DNA from: Oikopleura dioica
Lineage: Eukaryota; Animalia; Chordata
Assembly: GCA_907165135.1 (NCBI GenBank)
Contig: OU015567.1
Coordinates: forward strand, 1,116,001-1,180,000
Direction: 5' to 3'
Length of the DNA: 64,000 nt
The notes under the pieces were generated by a model, which saw only the letters and a list, made by a program, of their open reading frames with translations, was not told where the DNA came from and searched no databases. Positions 52,494 to 56,899 of this stretch are shown piece by piece (position 1 is the first letter of the stretch; every line of letters starts with the position of its first letter). The translations under genes were made by a program, and so were the position numbers.

Positions 52494-54174
52494 TTTGAAA
52501 ATCTGTGTGGCTGGAATAGGACCTTGGAGTCTATTGAAACCGCTGGCAAGGGACGGGAGGGCTCGATTTAGCAAAGAGGGAGACAACTGTGCAAGAGGCA
52601 GCGCAGTTGACTCTTTTTGACACTATAAATGGGTACCGCTGCGGGGGAGAGAGCAGATGACTGATATCGTTGATGAGTCAAGTTAAAAAGCTTTGCCAAA
52701 AGTTCAAAGGCTAGAGCTGAATGATAAATTATTATTTAATAATTCAGTATTTTCAATCGTAAAGAAAGGATTATGCAAGGATGATTTTTATCTGATAACT
52801 AAACTCTCGATGAAACAAAAGAAAAAGTACTGCATCCGAAAGTGAACTCAGAATGGAGACATTACAATGATGTGATTGCGCAAAACATATGGTTTTCGAA
52901 TAATCTAACCCAGTTCTCATGAATTTTTTCCCTGAAAAATATGGACTTATTATTCTGAAAGTCTGATTATCTTTAGTATAAAAGAAGGTTCTCCTAAGTT
53001 TTGGCACCGCAAAAATAAAGATGCAAATAATTTTTACTCTCTTTTTACTTCAATTTGGAACAGCTCAAATGTTTTTGACACGAAAATGGAAGAGAAGCTT
53101 CATGCAAGACTACCTGAACAACCGGAATGAAGCCGTCGAATTTCAAAAGAAGCAGCTCCATGACAATGGAATGTCATGGTTTTGACGTTATCTTCTCTCA
53201 AAAAGACTTTGATTGAATAAAAAATATCAAAAATCTCGTTATCACCGTGAAATGGTAAAAAGTCAAGCCCTAAAAAGGGCTAAGTAATTCTCAATTTTTT
53301 TTATTAATCCCTTGGTTTAGGAAAAATATCCGTCGACCTCTTTCCTCATAATAACTCGTGCGAAAGCAGATTGCTTTTTTTATCTAAAAATATTTTTTTA
53401 ATAAGAGTAGAAGGTAAAGCCAACTGTACTTACCACATCGGAAGAGCTTCCCCAAAAACTCACAAATCGCATATGAAGCACTCCCGCTCTTCCTGCCGTT
53501 TAAATATGCCAAGGTGAGAAGCACAACGAAATTTTCTTTCTAGACCTTCGCTTCTGCAAACTGCTGCGCCGCTTCTCCAAAAGATCGCCTTTTTTCTCTA
53601 GATATGCCCGAGCTTCTCACCAAAGCGTATAAAAACGGAGGTAAAGTGGGAATCAACCATACTGAAGATTTCCTCTTCGGGAGGAGGATTTCCCCAGAAA
53701 CACGCCGTGAAGTCGGTGCAGAGCGAATTTCCCCTCAAAGCGCAGGGACACAAGAAAAGTCCCAAGAAGAAAGCCCTTATCAGGGCTACAAATTTCAATA
53801 AGAACTGCCGCTCCAGTTCTCGTTCGGCGTATTTTCGGTAGAATTCCTATTTGCAATATTTATTGAGTGTTTTTTCAAAACAAGATAATTCGATAATAGA
53901 GTCAAAAACTCCATTATCGAAAAACTACAAGTAACGAAAGGGATATTATTCCAACAAGTCCATCTTTTTTGAAATGTCGTCATTTTAAGATCAACATCTA
54001 CTCAGGATGTGCATAATTAACTAAAACGGCCCTCAATGTTAATCAAGTGACTCCCGGTTTTGCGGAGAGTTTTCGTTAGTATAATACATTTTAGCTAATT
54101 CATAATTAACAGCCACTCTCTCTACTGATCTCATTTGACTAACCACATTATTCTTCAAAACGCGCTGGTCGCCG

Positions 54175-54182
54175 TATATAAA
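54175..54182 (+). promoter_or_regulatory. TATA box of the neuropeptide-like gene
   Basis: TATATAAA about 100 nt upstream of ATG 54277. Confidence 0.5.
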
Positions 54183-54276: not shown

Positions 54277-54812
54277 ATGTTGCTTAAATTATTTTATTTC
54301 TTCTCAGTCGCTGTTTTTAGTGTCACGTGAGTAAGAAACAATTGTTTAACATCCGAGAATTTTACGTAAGGGGGAATTATTGGTAAAAAAAATTTTTGAT
54401 TTGGAAACCATAAATTCTTGATAAAAAGGAAAATATGATTTTTTGAAAGAAGTTACAGTTGAATAAAAATTTTTAAATTCTATAATTGCTTCATGCATAT
54501 TTTGTGATTTTTCTTTATGGGATAGGATATATTTGCATAGGAATAATGCAAGTTATTCAATAGCAACAGCAATAAAATAAAAGAGCTTACAAAACTTTCA
54601 GAAAAGCCAGCTACGTCTACGATGATCTGATGGAAAAGCGCCAGTACTTCAACAACATGCTTCCAGAAATGTCTGTAATGGAGGTAACAATGCCCCTTTG
54701 ATCTTTCAAAATTCATTTTTCTTACTTTCAGCCAGTGTTTGGCCGAAGAAAAGCCACCCTGAGAAGACGACTTCAAAACTACATCCGAGCAAATCGCCGT
54801 TCAAGTGTCTAA
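54277..54812 (+). CDS. Putative amidated neuropeptide precursor (3 exons)
   Basis: Exons 54277-54326, 54602-54683 and 54732-54812 give MLLKLFYFFSVAVFSVTKA-SYVYDDLME-KR-QYFNNMLPEMSVMEPVF-G-RRK-ATLRRRLQNYIRANRRSSV*. Confidence 0.7.
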
Positions 54813-54971
54813 CTCCTGTTAGAAATGAAATAAAAGAAGATTTTAAAAGAATAAATTTTGTAAGGGATTGTTTGTTAATTTGATACCGATCACGCGCCAA
54901 GCCAGAGCTCCGGCGGCGCTCGCGGAGACTCAGATTCCTGAAAGATAAAAAATCAGAGAAAACGAGAAAAA

Positions 54972-56899
54972 ATGATCATGGAAAGCGACGAGGTAGATTC
55001 TTTTGATGAAAGTATTTTAATAAAATAAGTTGATCGAAACGAACAAGCCGTCAAAATCAATCAAATCAATCAATGAAAATGGAGCCTCTGGTTTTCAACG
55101 ATTTTGGGCTCAAGAAGCTAATCGGCTGATTGTTTTCACTCTTGCCGGTGTGATTTTTGGAGTGAGTCTTGGAATACTGCTGATTAGTGTTGCTGATTTG
55201 TCGGAAGATGTCATCGGATACATTGAATATCCGGGGGAGATAATGATGAGGAACGGGGCTCTAGAATTTATAAGAAAAATATGTTTTTTTTCTTTAGATT
55301 TTTTGACAACAAAAGGTGTCTTTTATTGAAGAATTTGACATTTAGTAGGCCGTTTTCTCCGAATTCCTTAGTCTGAGAGCAGCTCGAGTCCAAGTTTAAT
55401 TGCCCTCTCGATCAAAATTTAAAAAAAGAAGCCCTGATTAAAGAGCGCTGAAATGCGTAGTCATGCCGTTGATAATAACCTCCTTGATTTCGGGCTTGGC
55501 GAGCATGGACCCAAAAACGTCGGGAAAGCTCGGAATTAGGGCGATGACGTATTATTTGTCGACGACGATGTGTGCGACTATTTTGGGTATGATCCTCGTC
55601 AGCATCAGTAAACCTGGATCATACGCGGAAAAACAACTTTGCTCGGAAAACATCACGGCCAATTGTGTCGTTTACGAGCCCAGTCACGTGTCAACCGTCG
55701 ATACTTTCCTGGACATCGGCCGAAATCTCTGCCCCGACAACGTCTTCGCCGCTACTTTTCAACTCGACAAGACGGTAATTGAAGAAACTAAAGAAGGAGC
55801 AGTTCAGAAGAAACGGATCAAGACGGCTTCTCCCAACGTTCTTGGCTTAATTTCCTGCGCGCTGCTGATCGGGATTTGTATGCAGTTGCAACAAACGGAC
55901 GAAAACGTTGTTTTGGTCATCAAACTTGTGGACGGTATGAACAAGTTGCTAATGAAGGCCGTGAAAATGATTATTTGGGGATGGGTTGCCAAAGCTATCA
56001 TTGAAATTATTTAATTGCCAGCCTAGGACTTCTATCGCTTAAAATTTAGTTTCAACCTTTTTAAAGACCACTCCAATCGGAATCGGCTCGTTGATTTGCG
56101 GCTCTATCGTCAAATACGCTGGTGCTTCGACGATTTCCACGATGATCGGAATCTACACTGTGACAATTCTCGGCGGCCTCGCTTTCCATGCTCTGGTCAT
56201 CTTGCCTTTGGCTTATTTTTTCTTTACACGGAACAATCCTTTCAGAATCTACAGTGGCCTCGCTTCAGCTGTTGTTACTGCTTTTGGCACGTCAAGTTCG
56301 GCGGCTACTTTGCCTCAGACTATGTCTTGTCTTGAAGGTAAGATCATCGCATTTTTCAATTTCGTGATATTTCTCCTAGAAAACCTGAAAATGGACATCC
56401 GAGTGACCCGATTTATGCTCCCTCTTGGCGCAACAATGAACATGGACGGAACTGCTCTTCTAGAAGGCGTCGCGGCCATCACAATCTCTCAAATTTACTC
56501 CTCAAATTTGCAGTTTTCCGATTACTTTACAATTTCGCTGACTGGTAAGAATCGCATGTTAATATCATTTGGCTTATTTTGCTTTGGCTAGCAACACTGG
56601 CCTCGGTCGGAGCGGCTTCGATTCCGTCCGCGGGCTTGGTGACGCTCGTTCTCGTCGTTTCCGCGCTTGGCTTGCCCACAACAGGTTAATTTAATTTTCT
56701 TTGGAAACAACTTTGTCGAAACTGCAAAAGTTTGGATTTGAAATCGACAAGTTCAAATTTCAAATTATCTTTAGACATTGGAATCCTGTTCAGCGTAGAA
56801 TGGGTGCTCGACCGATGCCGTACCGTTGTGAACGTTTTAGGCGACTCCATCGGCGTTGGAATAATAAACCATTTGTCACGTGACGACTTACTTCAATGA
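54972..56899 (+). CDS. SLC1A: SLC1 excitatory amino-acid transporter (EAAT-like)
   Basis: [87 protein letters not shown] (Arg specificity residue of acidic-substrate members). Confidence 0.93.

Follow-up and report, generated by a model that had tools for sequence, protein, structure and literature searches.

A conserved, prohormone-type peptide precursor gene without a known family in Oikopleura dioica: a candidate from sequence comparison

Background

Is a very short, three-exon reading frame in the genome of Oikopleura dioica a real gene and, if so, does it encode the precursor of a signalling peptide? The question is relevant for this animal, which has the most compact chordate genome, the smallest of a free-living chordate, has lost many genes and possesses a tiny nervous system that can be mapped. 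To our knowledge hardly anything of its peptide signalling repertoire has been described, and its neuropeptide set is much reduced. Searches of the literature found no inventory of this repertoire, no report of the peptide string described here and no work on neuropeptides or peptidergic systems of Oikopleura. The frame lies in a stretch of 64,000 nt, called here the window, and an earlier note had read it as an unrecognised neuropeptide precursor.

Results and discussion

Gene model and public record

When the three exons listed in Table 1 were joined by script, they formed a single frame of 213 nt encoding 70 amino acids and a stop, with both introns bounded by GT-AG. In order, the product has a hydrophobic N-terminus, an acidic spacer, Lys-Arg (KR), Gln followed by 16 residues, Gly-Arg-Arg-Lys (G-RRK) and a basic tail. 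The TATA box, the three GT-AG exons, the KR site, the 17-mer, the F-G-RRK end and the basic tail described in the earlier note were thus all found (Table 1). A polyadenylation signal follows the stop, and GAAATAAAA is found at a similar spacing 3' of the stop in two orthologous contigs (L008 and L010, see below).

The description of the gene as unrecognised was right for its function and wrong for its CDS, which is already deposited, together with a second isoform lacking the leader. Searching with the stop-free open frame of exon 2 (window positions 54576-54698) retrieved a protein (P0001, GenBank CAG5109669.1) that a script comparison found identical, letter for letter, to the 70-residue product. 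This entry, present in GenBank and UniRef, is the unnamed AUGUSTUS model Oidioi.mRNA.OKI2018_I69.chr2.g4183 (g4183.t1), which places the window in the Okinawa O. dioica genome of PMC8008620. The CDS is therefore public, without a functional name, and its reading as a conserved peptide precursor belonging to no known family appears to be new. An exact-match look-up of the protein in public assemblies returned no record, so no transcript-derived copy was found.

Table 1. Positions in the window of the g4183 features and of neighbouring elements
Feature	Positions	Strand	Remarks
Upstream block AATTCATAATTAAC	54097-54110	+	contains a TAATTA homeodomain-type core; 14/14 identical between window and L010
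TATA box TATATAAA	54175-54182	+	about 95 nt 5' of the ATG
Start ATG	54277	+	read from the sequence
Exon 1	54277-54326	+	ATG plus the greater part of the hydrophobic leader; 16 codons + 2 bases, phase 2
Exon 1 donor	after 54326	+	AC/GTGAGT
Intron 1	54327-54601	+	275 nt, GT-AG
Exon 2	54602-54683	+	82 nt; acceptor TTTCAG/, donor GAG/GTAACA; end of leader with TKA/S cleavage context, then acidic spacer
KR	54636-54641	+	convertase site, exon 2
Gln and peptide residues 1-14	54642-54683	+	exon 2
Intron 2	54684-54731	+	48 nt, GTAACA...TTTCAG; in-frame TGA inside
Exon 3	54732-54812	+	acceptor TTTCAG/, stop TAA
PVF	54732-54740	+	exon 3
Gly-Arg-Arg-Lys	54741-54752	+	exon 3; spacer ATL next
RRR	54762-54770	+	exon 3
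LQNYIRAN, second conserved peptide	54771-54794	+	exon 3
RR	54795-54800	+	exon 3; SSV, then stop
AATAAA poly(A) signal	54829-54834	+	17 nt past the stop
g4183.t2 upstream exons	53604-53640, 53741-53837	+	from mapping of the t2 protein (P0002) onto the window
54-aa ORF	53021-53185	+	unannotated, single exon
TATA-like GTATAAAAG of 54-aa ORF	~52976-52985
AATAAA of 54-aa ORF	near 53217
Non-coding block GGGATTGTTTGTTAATTTGATAC	54864-54886		23 nt
First exon of next gene	54972-54992		conserved in L010

Orthologues in two further lineages

An exhaustive HMMER search of 1.84 billion protein representatives gave three matches, namely the two isoforms of the Okinawa (OKI) genome and P0003 (E 2.9e-8), a 110-aa ORF that reads through intron 2 on a 519-nt ENA metagenome contig (L008); no relative outside Oikopleura appeared in this search. 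Scanning JGI metagenome contigs with a two-sequence alignment added L009 and L010, and a word search found P0004 on the ENA contig L011. The four contigs represent two further lineages, one being L008 and the other L009/L010/L011, which come from three samples, are 99.5-99.9% identical to each other and are 79% identical to L008. A word-index protein search from the window returned the two OKI isoforms only, and its blanks are uninformative because it missed P0003, which HMMER later found. Queries with DNA, exon 2 and exon 3 against the animal's own genome (64.28 Mb in 19 contigs) found no paralogue beyond the locus. By these searches, g4183 is a single-copy gene confined to Oikopleura-type lineages.

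From the tiny introns, the synteny and the shape of the tree we infer that the metagenome contigs derive from Oikopleura-type organisms. The tree places OKI outside and L008 together with L010. This fits the published topology of Okinawa versus Osaka plus Barcelona/Bergen, with separations of about 25 and 7 million years (PMC11067885). The L008 contig has a k-mer coverage of 0.64, which makes its details less certain, and its positions 1-90 are unusually G-rich precisely where L010 has the TATA region; this 5' end looks like a read-end sequencing error. For both reasons L008 was given less weight.

Exon structure and purifying selection

All relatives share with the window its three exons, intron phases and GT-AG sites. 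The L008 and L010 orthologues were analysed exon by exon. Exon 1 has 50 nt in L010 and 47 nt in L008, with phase 2 and a GTGAG donor; exon 2 has exactly 82 nt in every lineage; and exon 3 of the relatives has 84 nt. Intron 2 of the relatives (42-44 nt) interrupts the same codon boundary. The acceptor near 54540, proposed earlier as a possible alternative splice site, is not needed, as the short first introns of the relatives stop at the same exon-2 boundary.

As a separate observation, intron 1 measures 275 nt in the Okinawa lineage, compared with 47-49 nt in each of the two other lineages. Its additional DNA does not recur in the animal's own genome.

Nei-Gojobori counts, summed exon by exon, gave pS 0.69 and pN 0.22 for OKI versus L010, pS 0.70 and pN 0.25 for OKI versus L008, and pS 0.55 and pN 0.13 for L008 versus L010, synonymous sites being saturated between OKI and the relatives. 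Most differences fall on third codon positions (16/14/36, 18/17/36 and 11/6/29 for the three codon positions in the same pairs). Constraint is strongest in a core of 17 codons, MEKRQ[Y/F]FNNMLPEMSVM, where pN is 0.00-0.023 versus a pS of 0.5-1.0, with pS at 0.78 or more where pN is 0.023, and a single replacement (Tyr/Phe) stands against 6-9 synonymous changes. The tail RRLxNYxRANRR follows; its pN is 0.08-0.10 when OKI is compared with either relative and 0 when the relatives are compared with each other. The annotated frame is stop-free, and it is the sole frame with a ratio below 1 (pN/pS 0.13-0.35). The other two frames of the same alignments, used as a control, carry 2-4 stops and have pN/pS of 1.25-8.55. 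Fisher's test gave p of 3e-6 to 2e-5. In comparisons of OKI with the relatives, the first intron is unalignable (16-17% identity) and the second has about 60% identity. Judged by these substitution counts, g4183 is under strong purifying selection.

These data bear on the simplest alternative, in which there is no gene at all and the model is a chance spliced ORF upstream of a transporter gene of the SLC1 family, or an annotation artefact. The ORF is indeed very short and the public model is an automated prediction. However, chance and non-coding conservation are excluded, because only the annotated frame is constrained and because the exon-intron boundaries and the promoter are kept in three lineages. 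We give this alternative next to no credence, and the comparison of lineages indicates that g4183 is, almost beyond doubt, a genuine protein-coding gene.

Processing signals and the predicted products

A hydrophobic leader is found in all three lineages, with maximal 10-aa Kyte-Doolittle means of 1.9-2.5, and all three keep Ala at -1 and a small residue (Thr or Ser) at -3. The leader was called from hydrophobicity and the -3/-1 rule, so that its cleavage is a prediction; the context is T-K-A/S in OKI and S-S-A/N in both L009/L010/L011 and L008. The spacer reads SYVYDDLME in OKI and NVFTDAMME in the two other lineages. The sulfation-like context that had been seen in YVYDD is therefore without support, because the relatives have NVFTDA, with no Tyr, and the spacer tyrosines are not conserved. 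The KR-Gln junction is present in all lineages, and residues 1-13 of the peptide are fixed except for Tyr/Phe at position 2. The view that the frame follows prohormone grammar was thus borne out: leader, KR-Gln junction and peptide core are kept under strong purifying selection.

The C-terminal end of the peptide drifts. Residue 14 is Glu in OKI and Arg before Pro in both other lineages; for convertases, an Arg that precedes Pro is an unfavourable site. After PVF the sequence continues as G-RRK in OKI, A-S-G-RK in L009/L010/L011 and A-G-QSR in L008, giving a predicted Phe-amide in the first, a Ser-amide in the second and no usable site before the next RR in the third. Two of the three lineages have a dibasic site directly after Gly; L008 has no basic site right after Gly, and its difference after PVF spans many bases rather than one. 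Amidation is plausible in two of the three lineages, to judge from these sites, and the amidated residue is not conserved. For the product pQYFNNMLPEMSVMEPVF-amide, proposed earlier, the KR-Gln junction and the core are conserved, and the predicted Phe-amide end is specific to the OKI lineage, the relatives having FAS-G-RK and FA-G-QSR. By this comparison the constrained part is the core next to the predicted pGlu, the N-terminal 13 residues Q[Y/F]FNNMLPEMSVM. Conservation in many amidated neuropeptides is highest around the C-terminal amide; here the amide end is the least conserved region of the peptide, which weakens the prohormone reading.

The basic tail is present as described earlier, and that description overlooked a second conserved, dibasic-flanked peptide inside it. 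This is the octapeptide LQNYIRAN in OKI and LRNYMRAN in the relatives, flanked by RRR or SRR on one side and RR on the other; from these flanks, L[Q/R]NY[I/M]RAN may be a second released product. As for the enzymes, the animal's own genome has about six loci with a convertase P domain, and at three loci the domains Cu2_monooxygen and Cu2_monoox_C, of PHM type or DBH type, occur together.

On balance we favour, with some reserve, the reading of g4183 as a lineage-restricted, secretory, prohormone-type precursor of 70 residues for an extracellular signalling peptide. The route proposed here, every step of which comes from sequence grammar and conservation, would start with transcription at the conserved TATA promoter. 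The leader would be cut after Thr-Lys-Ala (Ser-Ser-Ala in the relatives) and a convertase would then cut the invariant Lys-Arg, exposing a Gln that could cyclise to pGlu. In the Okinawa lineage, cutting at Gly-Arg-Arg-Lys, trimming by a carboxypeptidase and amidation would yield a 17-residue peptide running from pGlu to Phe-amide, and the octapeptide, boxed by Arg-Arg sites, may also be released. The peptide would probably serve as an extracellular signal acting on a receptor. That its source is neuronal or endocrine is a guess from its class and from the conserved TAATTA block of the promoter.

The same layout could serve a secreted precursor whose active product is not a neuropeptide, being either a cationic host-defence tail or a non-neural signal (of gonad, gut or oikoplastic epithelium). 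In the host-defence version the Arg-rich C-terminal 19-23 residues would be active, and the acidic spacer and the 17-mer would form a neutralising propiece. A leader, an anionic segment and a cationic C-terminus are the layout of many antimicrobial-peptide precursors, and the g4183 product matches it, with a tail net charge of about +7; moreover, conservation is often higher in the propiece than in the mature defence peptide. However, the core of the tail is itself conserved (see the pN values above), and the tail is broken by RRR and RR and has few hydrophobic residues, unlike the fast-evolving amphipathic defence peptides. In a mere propiece, neither the invariant KR-Gln junction nor the Gly-dibasic site would serve a purpose. 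Furthermore, the leader lies in the least conserved exon here, whereas it is the most conserved part in frog-type defence-peptide genes, and g4183 is single-copy, whereas defence-peptide genes are usually multi-copy. We regard a non-neuropeptide product of this kind as unlikely.

Promoter and the leaderless isoform

Three upstream blocks are kept between OKI and L010: AATTCATAATTAAC; ACATTATT followed by TCAAA and CGCGC; and the TATA box. The latter, TATATAAA, is also found 5' of the ATG in L009, L010 and L011, and blastn gave 78% identity over 54 nt between L009 and the promoter part of the window at 54131-54182. Its perfect conservation suggests that AATTCATAATTAAC is a cis-regulatory element. 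Because these upstream blocks survive while the introns diverge, the leader-containing isoform t1 is supported as the conserved unit.

The second annotated isoform, g4183.t2 (P0002), has 98 residues and starts at 53604, about 670 nt upstream. Its splicing skips the TATA promoter together with exon 1 and uses the same exon-2 acceptor, so that the leader is replaced by a basic, low-complexity N-terminus of 45 residues. A tblastx comparison found nothing similar to its upstream exons within 4 kb 5' of the L010 orthologue, and this N-terminus was therefore treated as unconserved. The isoform is probably an upstream-start or read-through transcript and not a second protein. The OKI2018_I69 annotation was made with AUGUSTUS using RNA-seq intron and exon hints, and it lists 18,794 isoforms for 17,260 genes, an excess of only about 1,500 (PMC8008620). 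Because this hint-based annotation gives few extra isoforms, and yet has two here, the g4183 locus probably has transcript support, a deduction from the annotation method.

The t2 model also bears on another reading, that of a membrane-anchored or intracellular microprotein. The leader would be an uncleaved signal anchor, or missing, and both the conserved core and the basic tail would have an intracellular role. The annotated leaderless isoform agrees with this, as does the shortness of the hydrophobic stretch (about 13-16 residues). However, the stretch is also too short for a typical transmembrane helix, and the t2 N-terminus lacks a counterpart upstream of the L010 orthologue. Exon 1, its phase and the TATA promoter are conserved, and so are the small residue at -3 and Ala at -1. 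The dibasic sites, also conserved, are consistent with processing in the lumen. We consider a microprotein quite improbable, and a secreted precursor remains our preferred reading.

Comparison with known peptide families

No Pfam match was found by hmmscan at E up to 10 for exon 2, exon 3, the exon-2 open frame or the full protein. Together with the lack of relatives outside Oikopleura in the HMMER search, this agrees with the earlier statement that the peptide could not be assigned to a known family.

Several families were considered and rejected. The CCK/gastrin/cionin family was rejected since the peptide ends in E-P-V-F here, with a variable end in the relatives, and since Pfam Gastrin is absent at E up to 10. 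In form, gastrin-17 is a striking counterpart, a 17-mer that begins with pGlu and ends in Phe-amide, with Gly-Arg-Arg after it, although its pharmacophore is missing from the g4183 peptide. The resemblance lies in the 17-mer after a dibasic site, the Gln that can become pGlu, the Phe before Gly-Arg-Arg and the small precursor with a single main peptide. Unlike these peptides, the g4183 product has no W-M-D-F end (E-P-V-F here, F-A-S or V-F-A in the relatives) and no Tyr in an acidic context inside the peptide, the Tyr residues of the spacer being unconserved. RFamide peptides (NPFF, PrRP, QRFP, kisspeptin and GnIH) were rejected on the penultimate Val, which leaves no Arg-Phe, and on the relatives, which do not end in Phe. 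The F-x-G-L-M motif of tachykinins is absent from the OKI protein and its relatives.

The named clusters nearest to the protein in the ESM Atlas are mostly neuropeptide precursors (PDH, DH31, NPF, NPS, PrRP, galanin and spexin), the PDH score of 0.90 being within the reach of chance, as 4-10% of shuffled proteins have it. The PDH cluster shares 140 of 256 features, where the tool's benchmark for true family members is mostly at least 170, and of the ten best family-bearing matches only one falls in the family or clan of the top match. The layout of g4183 is like that of the PDH/PDF precursors, in which a leader and a spacer are followed by KR, some 18 peptide residues, Gly with basic residues and a short tail. 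Membership of PDH/PDF (PF06324) was nevertheless rejected, with no profile match at E up to 10 and ESM features below the same-family benchmark, and we know of no convincing alignment of the peptide to the PDH consensus. The ESM Atlas likeness to neuropeptide precursors is a class-level resemblance and serves as a lead only.

A parallel in kind is offered by the orphan neuropeptides Ci-LF, Ci-YFV/L and Ci-NTLP of Ciona, which likewise come from predicted or identified small secretory precursors of a tunicate, have no recognisable homologue beyond a narrow lineage and call for deorphanisation of their receptors. They are reportedly mostly non-amidated, in multi-copy families on one precursor. 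Unlike them, and without sequence similarity to them, g4183 would carry one pGlu peptide and one unrelated octapeptide.

Genomic neighbourhood

The downstream neighbour of g4183 is an SLC1/SDF transporter gene (PF00375, E 5e-21 and 8e-31), whose first exon is conserved in L010. The order g4183 to SLC1 transporter is kept between lineages, and the pair is still adjacent despite the extreme genome scrambling reported among O. dioica lineages (PMC11067885). On the other side, the 4 kb 5' of the L010 orthologue have no similarity to the window. The block GGGATTGTTTGTTAATTTGATAC, non-coding and kept in L010 and L011, sits in the interval from the g4183 poly(A) signal to the start of the transporter gene's first exon; by its position it is probably part of the transporter promoter.

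An unannotated ORF of 54 codons was also noticed 1.1 kb upstream of g4183. Its product starts with a hydrophobic leader and contains the cluster RKWKR, and the ORF is accompanied by a TATA-like element and AATAAA (Table 1). The exact sequence is absent from the protein collection searched, and it has no Pfam match. An intact paralogue, 52% identical, lies on contig C5 at 10573204-10573365 (L013, E 3.5e-10); a further copy, at C5:10439108, has decayed and is interrupted by two stops. Judged by these copies, the ORF may belong to a family of small secreted proteins.

Conclusions

Lineage-specific neuropeptides are common, so g4183 is unsurprising in kind. Its short name-free model does imply that the unnamed short models of OKI2018_I69 include real signalling genes, if the preferred reading of a secreted signalling precursor is correct. 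The predicted product is a concrete ligand that can be synthesised for receptor deorphanisation, and the compact promoter, which has conserved blocks and spans less than 200 bp, could be used to express reporters where the peptide is made; both would be useful for tunicate neurobiology. The gene also offers a test case for the evolution of peptide ends, with Phe-amide, Ser-amide and no amide predicted among cryptic species separated by about 7-25 million years (PMC11067885).

A more specific proposal, possible on the pattern of conservation and offered tentatively, is that g4183 encodes a larvacean-restricted peptide system with two products acting on orphan receptors, a pGlu peptide of 17-19 residues and the octapeptide L[Q/R]NY[I/M]RAN. 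The N-terminal 13 residues would carry the activity, and the amide end would be free to vary between cryptic species. If true, such a system would add a new family to the neuropeptide set of O. dioica.
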